64,000 nt of DNA from sequence record OP953026.1; one strand, 5' to 3'. The position numbers and the translations under genes are program-made. How positions within the stretch are numbered: the first letter of the stretch is position 1; every line of letters starts with the position of its first letter. The notes under the pieces are model-generated. The model searched no databases. It worked only from the letters and a program-made list of their open reading frames with translations, and was not told the DNA's origin. This document shows, piece after piece, positions 1,221-39,025 of this stretch.

Positions 1221-1240
1221 ACCCTCCCTTCGGGGAGGGT
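1221..1240 (+). terminator. intrinsic terminator
   Basis: ACCCTCCC-TTCG-GGGAGGGT plus TTTT. Confidence 0.9.
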
Positions 1241-1279
1241 TTTATTTATCTTTTTTTGTATTTAAACTATTTAAAAAGC

Positions 1280-1287
1280 TATATTAC
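1280..1287 (+). promoter_or_regulatory. phiKZ-type early promoter
   Basis: TATATTAC after TTTAAA elements, upstream of RBS and ORF. Confidence 0.85.
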
Positions 1288-1320
1288 AAATATGAATTTA
1301 ATAACCAAGAGGGCAATACA

Positions 1321-1584
1321 ATGACTGAACGTTTGAAATCCGTATGGTGCGCTTGCAGCTTACTGCGTGAACGCTGGAGACACATCCAAGACATTGCTGT
1401 CGGGGATGAACATCATGTCATAGTAAAAAACGATATGCTGATGGTGTTTCGTGGTCAAGTACCGGTAGGTAGCATGTACCGGGGTGACAGTGACCCACTC
1501 ATCTACGAGGGTGGTGCACTGGAAGAATTTACTAAAGTTGTATTGGATTTAGAATTCAATACTCGTGGTGAAACCAATAGTTAA
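1321..1584 (+). CDS. early hypothetical protein
   Basis: 87 aa, GAGGG RBS, first gene after early promoter. Confidence 0.8.
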   Translation: MTERLKSVWCACSLLRERWRHIQDIAVGDEHHVIVKNDMLMVFRGQVPVGSMYRGDSDPLIYEGGALEEFTKVVLDLEFNTRGETNS

Positions 1585-1610: not shown

Positions 1611-2018
1611 ATGAAATATGTAATTGCATTTATGTTGTCTATTGTAACTATCACTGCTAACTCGGCTGTCATGTACACTAATCGTGATTCATGCATCGAG
1701 TTTGTAAAACAGGCAGATGAATTGTTTGTAAAAGGTGCATCTGTAACTGAAGTGCAAATGAAGACTTATGAAAGGATTCATTATATCCTTAATAACACTA
1801 AAGATCTAAAGACCAACCAGTCTAAAGTTGAAGAACTCACTGGTCTATTTTACCTATGGTCTAAGGTAGATAAAATGGCAATTGAGGCAAGTTTGCCACG
1901 TGCAACAAATGCTGCTAAAGTCTATAAGACCACTCCTGAGAAATTCATCATTGATGGTTATTTCCAGCGTTGTGTAGCGGCAGGTGCGTTTGAAGCAAAA
2001 CCACTTACTCTAAAATAA
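1611..2018 (+). CDS. secreted two-Cys helical protein (paralog 1)
   Basis: signal peptide ending ANS-A; Cys near N-terminus (RDSC) and C-terminus (QRCV); GAGGT RBS. Confidence 0.85.
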   Translation: MKYVIAFMLSIVTITANSAVMYTNRDSCIEFVKQADELFVKGASVTEVQMKTYERIHYILNNTKDLKTNQSKVEELTGLFYLWSKVDKMAIEASLPRATNAAKVYKTTPEKFIIDGYFQRCVAAGAFEAKPLTLK

Positions 2019-2030
2019 TGGAGGTACAAC

Positions 2031-2390
2031 ATGCTTAAGAATTGGCTATTATTCCTTTTCCTGCCAATCCTGTCCATTGCATGTCAGCCTGCCCACGCTG
2101 TAGAAGTGGGTATTACTAAGAAATCATGTAATGTGGCAGTAAATCTTTCACAAAAAGCAACTGAGCTTTATGATAAGAACCTATCCCAATTTGAGATAAT
2201 GATGCAGTTAGACATGATCTCTCGTAAGGATATGGATGACTTAGAGTTCTATGCAGGTACCGTATATGCTAAATTAAACTTAGTTGATATTCGCGTAAAT
2301 AAACGAAAAGGATTTACCAATGGAGCTATTCTAGATAGGCTAGCTGAAAACTGTGTTGAAGCAATTGGTACTAAATTTAACTTGGAGTAG
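2031..2390 (+). CDS. secreted two-Cys helical protein (paralog 2)
   Basis: signal peptide ending AHA; TKKSC ... ENCVEAIG. Confidence 0.85.
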   Translation: MLKNWLLFLFLPILSIACQPAHAVEVGITKKSCNVAVNLSQKATELYDKNLSQFEIMMQLDMISRKDMDDLEFYAGTVYAKLNLVDIRVNKRKGFTNGAILDRLAENCVEAIGTKFNLE

Positions 2391-2393
2391 AAT

Positions 2394-3188
2394 ATGGTTA
2401 GTATTTATATTGTCATTATACTCATGGCTATGCTAGCTGCATTGACATGTGGTAATTTGGTAGATAGCTGGGTAAGGCCAGCTATTCTAAAGTGGTTAAA
2501 TGATGATGTCGCTATTCATTTCACCAATGCTACCTGGATGGTTGGGGGGATCCCTAATAGTGTTCCAATGCAACTAGGTAAAGCTGTTTGGTTACCCAAA
2601 TACGTGGGTGACGGAATACGTCTTTATATCACGGCTGATGAAATAAAATTTGGATGGAATGGTAAAGAAAAAGATGCTTTAGCACGAGCCATTGTTGAAG
2701 TTATCTTTATTGGTAAAAATCCAAATAGTAAACTTCTTGAAGTAAGTATTAAACCTATTTGGTTACACCCTTCTATCCAAAAAGAAAGTTTCTATTTAAT
2801 GTTTGATTGGGAAAAGCTTTATACAAAAAATGAAGAGATGCGTATTTGTTGGAAGACAATACGTCACACTTTTTTCTATGGATTCCTAGGTTTGCTATTT
2901 GGCGGTAGTGCCAATGCAGATAACCTTGTATTAACTGAACGTGGATGTGACCAATATGAAGCAATGGTGAGAACTATTGCATCTAAAGCTTATATTGGAT
3001 TAGATCCAGTTATGGGTAGGGAATTCATTATTAATGATCCTGATATGTTAAATGCCCGTGAGAAAGCACAACGTAATACCCGTATCATTATCGATATGGT
3101 GGAAACTGGACAAGAACCCAAAGACATTGCATTATGGATGAATACTCAATGTAAACAAGAAGCAGTGTCAAATTTAATCAAACAGTGA
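2394..3188 (+). CDS. two-TM membrane protein with C-terminal two-Cys domain (paralog 3); possible gp241-position gene
   Basis: N-terminal TM, internal signal-like segment ending SANA, TERGC ... TQCK; internal ATG at 2838. Confidence 0.75.
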   Translation: MVSIYIVIILMAMLAALTCGNLVDSWVRPAILKWLNDDVAIHFTNATWMVGGIPNSVPMQLGKAVWLPKYVGDGIRLYITADEIKFGWNGKEKDALARAIVEVIFIGKNPNSKLLEVSIKPIWLHPSIQKESFYLMFDWEKLYTKNEEMRICWKTIRHTFFYGFLGLLFGGSANADNLVLTERGCDQYEAMVRTIASKAYIGLDPVMGREFIINDPDMLNAREKAQRNTRIIIDMVETGQEPKDIALWMNTQCKQEAVSNLIKQ

Positions 3189-3201
3189 AAAAGGCATAGA
3201 T

Positions 3202-3585
3202 ATGAAAAGAAATTTTGAAGATGATCACGTGGTAATGGCAGTGGAAGTATATGAGAAACTGAAAGAAGCTGCTGCTTATTCATTACACTCTTCTGAAATT
3301 AGTAAGATCGAACGACATATGCGTAAGTTTAATCGTGTTCAACGCGATAAACATATTGAAAATATGCATATGGAAATGCTTGAGAAACGCGAGGCTATTA
3401 GAAAAGCAAAATCTTTCTTTTCTCAAAATGCCGGTAAAATTGGTTGCGTAGTAGATAGGCTTGTCAAAGTATGTGAAGTGTATAAAATGGATAAGTCTAT
3501 GGTGGTTGTTGAGTTTCTCCAACATAAATCTAAAATTAAAGTTCCAGTAAATCCTGAAAAAATTACTATTCTTACCATTAAATAA
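3202..3585 (+). CDS. hypothetical protein
   Basis: 127 aa ORF in operon. Confidence 0.8.
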   Translation: MKRNFEDDHVVMAVEVYEKLKEAAAYSLHSSEISKIERHMRKFNRVQRDKHIENMHMEMLEKREAIRKAKSFFSQNAGKIGCVVDRLVKVCEVYKMDKSMVVVEFLQHKSKIKVPVNPEKITILTIK

Positions 3586-3602
3586 ATGAAGAAGGATTTA
3601 AA

Positions 3603-4058
3603 ATGAAAAATGTAATTGCAGCAGCTTTCGCTGGTCTCATTGCCATTACCGGTATCATGTTCAATACCGCAATGGCTGAAATCAAGATTGGTAAAAAAGA
3701 TGCTCAACTCACTGTGCAGTCGTGTGCAATGGTTGAAACCATTACTAAACAAGCTGTATTTCGAATGAGTGAAGGTCATAGCGCAGATGAAGTTGGTGTG
3801 CTTATGCTCAACAACTCTGCTAAACTCAAAGATGAGTTGGATACCAATAATTGGATTGCGTTAACATTCGTATTCAATAGTCTTAATAAAATCAATAATG
3901 ACCTTAACAGTAAAGAGATCCATGATTATATCCGTAGTCAAGGTTACAATGTGACTACTCCTAATCTGGCAGCTTTTATCAGCGGGTATTATGGCAATTA
4001 CTGCATGAAGCATATTGGTGAGAAATTCACTCACATGGTAATTGTTGAACTCATTTAA
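3603..4058 (+). CDS. secreted two-Cys helical protein (paralog 4)
   Basis: signal peptide ending AMA; TVQSC ... NYCMKHIGEK. Confidence 0.85.
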   Translation: MKNVIAAAFAGLIAITGIMFNTAMAEIKIGKKDAQLTVQSCAMVETITKQAVFRMSEGHSADEVGVLMLNNSAKLKDELDTNNWIALTFVFNSLNKINNDLNSKEIHDYIRSQGYNVTTPNLAAFISGYYGNYCMKHIGEKFTHMVIVELI

Positions 4059-4090
4059 TTCATATCGAATACTTTCAAAAGGAAAATAGG

Positions 4091-4468
4091 ATGAAATACG
4101 TCTTCTCGCTCATTATCACTATGGTAGCAATGTCGGTTAATGCACAACCCGTAACCGTGTCATCTTGCTACGTGCTGCACAGCTTGGCAAAGAATATGGT
4201 TCAATTCTACACTAATGGCGGTGAGCCATTGGAGATGTATGCAATACTGCAAGATGAACTATCCATTGCCATAGATAAAAACCAGAGTGATAAGGCACTC
4301 GCTATTAATATCGCATTGGATAATGTCGATGTAATATACCAAAATCTCACTGATCCCGCACTTAAGCTTTTGGCAAAGAGCGAGGGAAGTGATCTTGGTG
4401 AGATGCTGACTGAAAAACTCAGTAATGGGTGTTTCAATATAGTCGGCGAGGAGTTGTATGATAACTAG
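4091..4468 (+). CDS. secreted two-Cys helical protein (paralog 5)
   Basis: signal peptide ending VNA; TVSSC ... NGCFNIVGEE. Confidence 0.85.
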   Translation: MKYVFSLIITMVAMSVNAQPVTVSSCYVLHSLAKNMVQFYTNGGEPLEMYAILQDELSIAIDKNQSDKALAINIALDNVDVIYQNLTDPALKLLAKSEGSDLGEMLTEKLSNGCFNIVGEELYDN

Positions 4469-4697
4469 AATCATCCTAATTGTTGCATGGGTATGGGTAA
4501 TCTCTCTTATGGGAATGATTACGTATGTTCTTTATGATACGTATCAATTTCGTAAGAAATTAGAAATGCCTGTTGTAGAATGGGAAGATAAGGCGAAGGA
4601 CACTCCTGTTAAGAAGTGTCCAGATGAAGTATTATTCGCTGAAGACCCAAAGGATGGCAAACTCAAAATGGGATGCCCTGAGAGTTATAAGAAATAA
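4458..4697 (+). CDS. small membrane-anchored protein with Cys pair
   Basis: N-terminal TM helix; two Cys in C-terminal part; GGAG RBS. Confidence 0.8.
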   Translation: MITRIILIVAWVWVISLMGMITYVLYDTYQFRKKLEMPVVEWEDKAKDTPVKKCPDEVLFAEDPKDGKLKMGCPESYKK

Positions 4698-4700
4698 TTA

Positions 4701-4718
4701 GAGGACCTTCGGGTCCTC
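4701..4718 (+). terminator. intrinsic terminator
   Basis: GAGGACC-TTCG-GGTCCTC plus T-run. Confidence 0.9.
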
Positions 4719-4779
4719 TTTTTAACCGACTGGACGGTTAAAACTAGGTGGGATAAATTAAACTATTTGAGGAAATCTA

Positions 4780-4887
4780 ATGCAACTTAGTAATGAACTT
4801 TTCTATGTGGGTATGGTAGCTGTATCAATGTCAATCGGTATGCTATTTAGCTATATTTACCACACTCATAAGAAAAAATATAAATAA
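4780..4887 (+). CDS. 35 aa single-TM peptide (not in ORF track)
   Basis: GAGGA RBS; [35 protein letters not shown]. Confidence 0.65.
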
Positions 4888-4896
4888 AGTCATAAA

Positions 4897-4943: not shown

Positions 4944-4951
4944 TATATTAC
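4944..4951 (+). promoter_or_regulatory. early promoter
   Basis: TATATTAC. Confidence 0.75.
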
Positions 4952-7628: not shown

Positions 7629-7636
7629 TATATTAC
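7629..7636 (+). promoter_or_regulatory. early promoter
   Basis: TATATTAC with TATTTAAA/TTTTAAA upstream. Confidence 0.85.
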
Positions 7637-38611: not shown

Positions 38612-39025
38612 CTACATTATATCTCGTGTACCATCATTCATTTCAACAACAGTGACTTTATCACCAACCTTTGGTTTTTCATTGGTAACTGTTTGAACCA
38701 TGTACTGCTTGCCATCTGTATTAACAATCAGTTTACATTGAAATGTTTCAGTAGCACTAACATTATTACCGACTGCGCCGCCTGCGGCACCACCGATTAA
38801 ACCACCTACCCAACCTCCAGATTTACCAAAGATTGCTCGACCTAACACAGCGCCTGCGGTGGCTCCAACCGCACCTCCAACAGTAGTGCCGACAACACTA
38901 CTATCTTTAGCAACTAGCTGACATTCTGAATGTGCAATAATACCATCTGTAGTTGATTTTACTTCAGTTGCTGCAAATAGGACAGTGGACCACATTAAAA
39001 CTACGAATGCGATAATCTTAATCAT
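38612..39025 (-). CDS. secreted glycine-zipper 2TM protein (YcfJ/SlyB/17-kDa antigen-like)
   Basis: signal peptide; GTTVGGAVGATAGAVLG...GGLIGGAAGGAVG; C-terminal PKVGDKV. Confidence 0.85.
   Translation of the reverse strand: MIKIIAFVVLMWSTVLFAATEVKSTTDGIIAHSECQLVAKDSSVVGTTVGGAVGATAGAVLGRAIFGKSGGWVGGLIGGAAGGAVGNNVSATETFQCKLIVNTDGKQYMVQTVTNEKPKVGDKVTVVEMNDGTRDIM

Follow-up and report, generated by a model that had tools for sequence, protein, structure and literature searches.

A family of predicted exported, two-cysteine helical proteins encoded by an early-promoter operon of phage phiKZ

Envelope-directed phage proteins and the phiKZ array

Disulfide-clamped helical proteins that phages export as accessory factors are already known as a kind. 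T4 Spackle (Sp, gp61.3) is an early, periplasmic helical bundle of 75 amino acids (aa) with a Cys29–Cys81 disulfide, and it binds and inhibits the incoming tail lysozyme; its export signal is cleaved and the protein is dispensable (PMC7677548). T5 Llp, a lipoprotein that faces the periplasm and contains an intramolecular disulfide, jams the receptor from within (PMC9586334). Here we analyzed five open reading frames (ORFs) located between positions 1,611 and 4,468 of a 64,000-nucleotide (nt) stretch of sequence record OP953026.1 (the window, at its full length), whose products resemble these proteins in predicted design. What is new is the fold family, the arrangement of the genes as a tandem array and the existence of a membrane-fused member.

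The window matched phage pPA-N1803-4At.2 at 100% identity and phiKZ itself at 99.9%, and the five ORFs correspond to PHIKZ247, 248, 249, 251 and 252, every one of which is annotated as hypothetical. A first-pass annotation, made from the sequence without database searches, had read them as five secreted, disulfide-stapled paralogs and knew of no described function for them; our literature searches likewise found no paper on these proteins. The five genes are the following.

1611..2018, + strand: PHIKZ247, signal peptide at about residues 1–18, Cys28, Cys121, five predicted helices
2031..2390, + strand: PHIKZ248, probable lipoprotein with lipobox SIA-C18, predicted five-helix mature bundle, Cys33, Cys108
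2394..3188, + strand: PHIKZ249, single 264-aa membrane protein
3603..4058, + strand: PHIKZ251, signal peptide at residues 1–25 (AMA-E, the hyphen marking the cleavage site), Cys41, Cys134, family member with an insertion of about 16 residues
4091..4468, + strand: PHIKZ252, signal peptide at residues 1–18 (VNA-Q), Cys26, Cys114, acidic member with an isoelectric point (pI) of 4.2

Like Spackle, the array products are predicted to be made early, to carry an export signal and to fold into helical bundles with a cysteine near both mature ends, and they appear to be dispensable. Unlike Spackle, they are larger (about 95–125 aa when mature), are encoded in tandem arrays and include predicted lipoprotein and membrane-fused forms. 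Spackle was absent from the best 50 of 106 PDB fold matches (E ≤ 10) listed and from the PDB profile search. As a small predicted phage lipoprotein, gp248 is also reminiscent of T5 Llp and of the Cor superinfection-exclusion lipoproteins, which target an envelope component from its periplasmic side (PMC9586334). Llp, at about 61 aa, is however not built as a helical bundle like the modelled gp248, and no homology was detected among the PDB fold matches listed or in the PDB profile search. The SAPLIPs (saposins A–D, NK-lysin and Na-SLP-1) appear to share with the modelled gp248 a compact four- or five-helix bundle in which the first and last helices lie side by side, and have a disulfide at the chain ends that staples these two helices, as the predicted clamp disulfide would in the phiKZ proteins. 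By contrast with the SAPLIPs, which possess six cysteines in three disulfides, the phiKZ proteins have two cysteines, do not match SapB_1 or SapB_2 of Pfam and are not cationic, and the gp248 ortholog of phage Churi was non-toxic when overexpressed in PAO1 (PMC11849849). Finally, the T4 antiholin RI, the periplasmic sensor of lysis inhibition, is another small helical periplasmic phage protein; unlike the array proteins, RI has a signal-anchor-release domain and binds the holin, no similarity to it was detected, and the array has no link to the phiKZ lysis cassette, gp141–144 (PMC12894885).

Homology, predicted fold and export of the array proteins

Pairwise BLAST among the five proteins was essentially negative, and each protein was assigned to its own PHROG; PHROG 15284 scored gp251 at E 0.0026. 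We defined the family around gp248, as PHROG 15284 plus relatives, and searched a profile of the mature domains, in which gp251 and gp252 were included, against 1.84 billion representative proteins. Only 19 members were found, and neither gp247 nor the C-terminal domain of gp249 was retrieved. Both cysteines were invariant in the 24-sequence family alignment, as was a glycine column. Because gp251 and gp252 sat in the search profile, we ran leave-one-out hidden Markov models (HMMs), with the own clade omitted, against all 188 ORFs of the window. The top non-self matches of the gp248-clade HMM were gp251 (E 3e-4) and gp252 (E 6e-3), and those of the gp251-clade HMM were gp252 (E 2.6e-6) and gp248 (E 8e-4), indicating that gp248, gp251 and gp252 are homologous. 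Alignment of gp252 with the gp248 family using hhalign gave P 3.4e-4.

The proposal that all five proteins are paralogs is therefore supported at the level of sequence comparison for gp248, gp251 and gp252, whereas for gp247 it is undemonstrated. The family HMM scored gp247 at E 0.16 (rank 4 of 188) and the C-terminal domain of gp249 at E 0.37 (rank 5 of 188), neither of which is significant, while hhalign produced a colinear alignment with P 0.22 for gp247 and an out-of-register alignment with P 0.012 for the gp249 domain. We regard gp247 as a possible remote member whose membership is unproven; it is related to gp302 of PS119XW, which lies in an equivalent array and has a C-terminal motif in common with gp247. 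Relatives of gp251 were Psa21 gp333 and the protein P0023.

AlphaFold2 modelled mature gp248 confidently from the 24-sequence alignment (pLDDT 94.6, pTM 0.84) as a five-helix bundle with helices at residues 6–24, 29–41, 47–58, 60–68 and 73–86 and a small beta-bridge joining residues 2–3 to 91–92. Cys9 and Cys84 fall within the opening turn of helix 1 and the final turn of helix 5, respectively, just inside the point where the two chain ends pair; this modelled geometry is compatible with a clamp disulfide. When compared with BFVD, the model matched PhiPA3 gp303 and proteins of Psa21 and 201phi2-1 at TMq 0.80–0.92, a 151-aa entry at TMq 0.77 (E 6.5e-3) and a 264-aa entry at TMq 0.73 (root-mean-square deviation 2.3 Å over 88 columns); further matches were a second 201phi2-1 protein, a 150-aa Psa21 paralog and a PS119XW protein, and the family matches overall spanned TMq 0.64–0.92. 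The lengths and accession series of the 151-aa and 264-aa entries suggest that they represent gp251 and gp249 of a phiKZ-like phage; if so, the gp248 fold would be shared by gp251 and by the gp249 C-terminal domain. The AlphaFold2 model of gp247, obtained from a two-sequence alignment, had five helices of similar lengths at a pLDDT of 64, and this low-confidence model matched only itself in BFVD, with no family matches. The confident gp248 model and the matching entries of gp251 and gp249 length suggest that the shared fold expected for the array extends to gp251 and probably to the gp249 domain, whereas the gp247 model is poor.

No significant fold match to the gp248 model was found in PDB. 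Among the matches listed, the only coherent ones were saposin A, saposin C and nematode Na-SLP-1 (TMq 0.52–0.63, TMt 0.57–0.72), of which saposin A (4uex) gave TMq 0.63, TMt 0.72, a root-mean-square deviation of 2.8 Å over 81 columns and a probability of 0.91 with a non-significant E of 0.77; prosaposin appeared in the PDB sequence-profile search with an E of about 1.1, also not significant. By topology the modelled fold resembles that of saposins, although it would have a single clamp disulfide in place of three; since the Foldseek E values are around 1, this likeness is an analogy of topology and homology is not claimed.

Considering these results together, we find it very improbable that there is no real family and that the shared features arose by chance among small secreted helical proteins. 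The negative pairwise BLAST, the separate PHROGs and the non-significant HMM and hhalign scores of gp247 and the gp249 domain would suit such a coincidence, but the reciprocal leave-one-out matches of gp248, gp251 and gp252 head the 188 ORFs with gp247 and gp249 ranking fourth and fifth, the cysteine and glycine columns do not vary, and the independent BFVD models, gp251-like and of gp249 length, superpose on that of gp248. For gp248, gp251 and gp252 the coincidence is already refuted.

To call signal peptides we used a heuristic of our own, consisting of a basic n-region, an uncharged h-region and a small-x-small site. The small-x-small sites of gp247, gp248, gp249, gp251 and gp252 were, in this order, ANS-A, AHA-V, ANA-D, AMA-E and VNA-Q. 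Export-type N-termini were clustered, four canonical signal peptides and two transmembrane proteins being encoded within about 3 kb and few in the other 61 kb of the window. Each mature domain contains exactly two cysteines, located 8–16 residues from its start and 11–17 from its end, a placement with a chance probability of about 0.05 per protein if cysteines were placed at random. The pattern of one early and one late cysteine per mature chain, as described in the first-pass annotation, was thus found in all five domains, and the motifs it quoted (TNRDSC, TKKSC, TERGC, TVQSC, TVSSC, NCVEAIG, YCMKHIGE and GCFNIVGE) all occur in the translations. A diverged relative from a public sequencing run (L007; 59–85% protein identity) keeps all the cysteines and all the export signals. 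All genes were under purifying selection, with ratios of nonsynonymous to synonymous substitution rates (dN/dS) of 0.03–0.23 where computable (0.08 for gp247), synonymous sites being near saturation.

The predicted manner of export differs among the array proteins: gp251 and gp252 are predicted to be of the soluble secreted type expected for all five, whereas gp248 has a lipobox and the two-cysteine domain of gp249 belongs to an inner-membrane protein. In gp248, C18, C33 and C108 were invariant across six isolates. By a count made by eye, the lipobox cysteine was present in 16 of the 19 gp248-clade members, mostly within a canonical lipobox ([LVI][ASTVI][GAS]C type), the residue at −1 being G, A or S in 12 of them and M in 4. 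Because the lipobox cysteine is conserved and the UniRef name of gp248 is 'Lipoprotein', this protein is probably lipid-anchored rather than cleaved at AHA-V.

The product of gp249 is a single protein in which we recognized the following segments.

2397–2450, + strand: uncharged N-terminal transmembrane segment, residues 2–19
2466–2837, + strand: loop domain of about 125 aa, predicted to be cytoplasmic, residues 25–148
2838–2918, + strand: internal export segment with a basic stretch, a hydrophobic stretch and an ANA site, residues 149–175
2919–3188, + strand: predicted exported two-cysteine helical domain, residues 176–264

The same layout, in a single ORF, was found in phiKZ, L007 and two further related loci (L015 and L012). 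The motif (L/V)TE(R/S)GC opens the two-cysteine domain 10–11 residues past the small-x-small site, and dN/dS was 0.06–0.24 in every segment. The positive-inside rule would place the N-terminus and the C-terminal domain of gp249 in the periplasm and the middle domain in the cytoplasm. Positions 2838–3188 had initially been taken for a secreted protein of their own, which would be 116 aa long and begin at an internal start at 2838. This start lacks a well-spaced Shine–Dalgarno sequence, and a separate gene is ruled out by the conservation of the fused ORF in four lineages, by the absence of a methionine at this position in L015 and by purifying selection over the whole frame; the supposed signal peptide is the internal export segment of gp249. 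The only database record of a separate 116-aa protein, a Pseudomonas aeruginosa RefSeq entry (P0045; WP_273650097.1), is identical to the C-terminal part of gp249 with its start placed at the internal methionine. We rejected it as an artefact of a 550-bp contig, which illustrates how an internal ORF can come to look independent.

Operon, distribution and possible roles

The genes lie between two hairpins, together with three further ORFs and a promoter motif.

1221..1240, + strand: terminator hairpin with an 8-bp GC-rich stem followed by a T run, closing the upstream gp246 unit
1259..1295, + strand: phiKZ early-promoter motif, consisting of an AT-rich upstream element and TATATTAC at 1280–1287
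1321..1584, + strand: PHIKZ246.1, first ORF of the operon, between the promoter and gp247, without export signal, not a family member
3202..3585, + strand: PHIKZ250, basic (pI 9.5), without export signal, not a family member, interrupting the array
4458..4697, + strand: PHIKZ253, single-pass membrane protein with a small two-cysteine C-terminal domain, overlapping the end of gp252
4700..4719, + strand: GC-rich hairpin, probable operon end, with a plus-strand stem followed by TTTTT (the scan scored the minus strand)

After the promoter, gp246.1, 247, 248, 249, 250, 251, 252 and 253 follow one another in tight packing. The five ORFs are in one operon, as proposed, but gp250 breaks up their tandem array. 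Upstream of the operon, where an early promoter had been postulated, there is a complete early-promoter motif of phiKZ. Its TATATTAC corresponds to the promoter consensus listed for phiKZ in Table 2 of PMC7058600, and an extended −10 box preceded by a T-rich element makes up the early motif as described in PMC8244752. In a scan of the window, the extended motif recurred nearly letter-for-letter at intergenic positions 7629, 44916, 45420 and 46895. L007 has kept the promoter motif upstream of gp247; gp246.1 is missing there, and the motif directly precedes gp247 (L007 1861–1994). The ortholog of gp248 in phage Churi was detected by mass spectrometry 15 min post infection (PMC11849849).

At the level of BLAST, gp248 homologs were found in PhiPA3, Phabio, PS119XW and Psa21, and gp247, gp249, gp251 and gp252 were confined to phages of the phiKZ species; gp248 is the core and most widely conserved member of the family. 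All named family members come from Pseudomonas-infecting nucleus-forming phages, and the remainder are from metagenomic contigs, where they occupy the same neighbourhood, downstream of a gp246-type HD hydrolase gene. The copy number varies from one (PhiPA3, Phabio and the loci L017 and L019) to two or three (Psa21, PS119XW, L016 and L018) and three to five in phiKZ. The genes for gp248 and gp249 are adjacent and 3–14 nt apart in phiKZ, L015 and L012, and gp253 co-occurs with the module in L007 and in L015 (homolog E 1e-12). Homolog searches using a word index found only near-identical proteins, and a related-locus search seeded with gp301 of PS119XW gave no match. A phage carrying a transposon insertion in orf252 is viable, and orf184–304 are described as largely non-essential and as possible host-interaction or anti-defence territory (bioRxiv 10.1101/2025.11.23.690004); the array genes are apparently dispensable in the laboratory.

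We tentatively favour the view that the array encodes envelope-protecting binders of the superinfection-exclusion type, because diversified genes that have an early promoter, vary in copy number, seem to be dispensable and encode predicted exported products suit such a role, and because Spackle and Llp are the nearest proteins by design. According to this proposal, the injected virion RNA polymerase would transcribe the gp246.1–gp253 operon from the early promoter shortly after infection, and the Sec and Lol pathways of the host would deliver most of the products to the cell envelope, gp248 as a lipoprotein, gp251, gp252 and probably gp247 as soluble periplasmic proteins, gp249 as an inner-membrane protein that exports a related domain and gp253 as a small membrane-anchored partner. 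The shared module would be a five-helix bundle of 10–14 kDa with saposin-like topology, in which a single disulfide, presumably formed by DsbA, clamps the first helix to the last. Such modules might dock onto envelope components or incoming enzymes and so shield the infected cell from a second attack, with the different paralogs covering different targets. The description in the first-pass annotation of a diversified family of early periplasmic effectors holds in the main for gp248, gp251 and gp252, and probably also for the gp249 domain that is predicted to be exported; for gp247 it is unproven.

Several observations weigh against envelope protection. No Spackle, Llp or RI appeared among the PDB fold matches listed or in the PDB profile search, so that the analogy is one of design. 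No superinfection exclusion of phiKZ is described in the literature we searched, and a higher multiplicity of infection (MOI) changes the timing of phiKZ lysis (PMC12894885), which implies that later phages still deliver some signal. A simple periplasmic inhibitor would not need the cytoplasmic domain of gp249, the saposin-like modelled fold points at least as much to lipid binding, and both export and the disulfide are predictions.

Lipid handling is accordingly one alternative, in which saposin-like paralogs would bind or shuttle phospholipid, lipopolysaccharide or lipoprotein acyl chains in the periplasm and thereby remodel or stabilise the envelope while the long infection lasts, or act on the early infection vesicle by feeding or maintaining its membrane. 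That saposins A and C and the nematode saposin-like protein are the best solved analogues, that prosaposin chains came up in the PDB profile search, even if not significantly, and that one member is predicted to be lipid-anchored and another membrane-fused are all consistent with it. We nevertheless consider it unlikely, given the Foldseek E values, a counterpart for only one of the three saposin disulfides and the missing SapB match; moreover, the early vesicle forms before the array genes are expressed, and variable copy number and dispensability suit arms-race genes better than a core lipid process. Should the topology nonetheless reflect lipid binding, it would represent an unusual case of a saposin-like fold in the bacterial periplasm. 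Early, dispensable and diversified genes of variable copy number would also be expected if the paralogs neutralised envelope immunity sensors or the periplasm-acting weapons of neighbouring bacteria, such as pyocins and the peptidoglycan or lipid hydrolases of type VI secretion systems, allowing the infected cell to survive until lysis. The location of the genes within the proposed host-interaction and anti-defence region (bioRxiv 10.1101/2025.11.23.690004) and the restriction of named members to Pseudomonas-infecting phages agree with such a role, which is doubtful in that no similarity to known anti-defence or immunity proteins was found in Pfam, NCBIfam, PADLOC or by PDB fold.

The membrane-fused architecture of gp249 raises a further possibility, namely that gp248, the soluble paralogs, gp249 and gp253 sense secondary adsorption and relay it inward as a trans-envelope sensor of lysis timing, constituting the missing periplasmic arm of the lysis inhibition proposed for phiKZ. 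Cells infected with phiKZ at high MOI lyse late, and the existence of a periplasmic signal has been proposed (PMC12894885); in addition, the set 248-249-251-253 is conserved in phiKZ, L007 and L015 with 248 and 249 only 3–14 nt apart, and gp249 is predicted to join a family-like periplasmic domain to a cytoplasmic one. However, most relatives, including PhiPA3, Phabio and Psa21, have the family without gp249 and gp253, the lysis cassette is located elsewhere (gp141–144) and there is no similarity to T4 RI, so that we hold such a sensor to be distinctly improbable. A broader version, to which we give equally little credence, is that the same proteins form a phage-built trans-envelope device that senses adsorption or envelope damage and signals into the cytoplasm. 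If true, nucleus-forming phages would gain their first described signalling system from envelope to cytoplasm, and the device would provide the periplasmic input to the MOI-dependent delay of phiKZ lysis. We also rejected a spanin role for gp248 and gp253, since experiments have assigned the spanin function of phiKZ to gp141 and gp141.1 (PMC12894885) and the operon has an early-promoter motif. With spanins, holin and endolysin all encoded at gp141–144, a direct role of the operon in lysis is unlikely.

Whichever explanation applies, phiKZ serves as the model for nucleus-forming phages and is related to therapy candidates, and prior work on it has been centred on the cytoplasm, namely on the vesicle, the nucleus and the ribosome; a 2025 review of nucleus-forming phages makes no mention of periplasm, signal peptides, secretion or secreted phage proteins. 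Here, an early operon appears to be devoted to the envelope and encodes a fold family found almost nowhere else. Since this operon is also apparently dispensable and can be deleted with published Cas13a and transposon sequencing (TnSeq) tools, it offers a concrete handle on three open questions: superinfection exclusion by chimalliviruses, the input to the apparent lysis inhibition and the response to envelope-level threats.

Neighbouring genes and minor observations

Within the operon, gp250 was the fastest-evolving gene, with 59% identity to L007 and a dN/dS of 0.23. Its first 80 residues matched phrog_18482 (E 7e-13), and in L015 an unrelated 237-aa protein occupies its position. In the same locus, which is metagenomic, an inserted gene for an NAD-dependent DNA ligase separates the HD hydrolase gene from the exported-protein module (L015 2504–4510). 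The hydrolase gene, gp246 (546–1202, + strand), is the conserved left neighbour of the module in PhiPA3, PS119XW, L007 and L015; its product contains an HD_4 domain (Pfam E 7e-12) with a RelA/SpoT-type hydrolase fold, and a role in the hydrolysis of (p)ppGpp or nucleotides is possible. On the other side of the operon, PHIKZ253.1 (4781–4888, + strand) encodes 35 aa that form nearly a single hydrophobic helix, and is flanked by two terminator hairpins just upstream of an early-promoter motif at 4944. Intergenic copies of this motif on the + strand at 4944, 7629, 19588, 44916, 45420 and 46895 mark other early units.

Elsewhere in the window, the ORF at 38612–39025 (− strand), which was considered as a sixth member owing to its signal peptide and early cysteine, was rejected as a glycine-zipper protein. 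It encodes 137 aa with a signal peptide and a long segment of GxxxG repeats, lies directly downstream of the ribonucleotide reductase genes and resembles small outer-membrane glycine-zipper lipoprotein-like proteins.

Two database entries deserve comment. The record of phage U5 (L002, MT995928.1, 1812–3389) labels gp247, gp248 and gp249 as MazF toxin, DNA methylase and methyltransferase, respectively, and these labels were unsupported by Pfam, NCBIfam, PADLOC and PHROGs. Many partial NCBI proteins attributed to 'Klebsiella pneumoniae' (P0003–P0006, P0009 and P0042–P0050) are 86–91% identical to gp248, gp249 or gp251; they sit on contigs of about 200–400 bp and look like reads of a diverged phiKZ-like phage that were carried into the assemblies.

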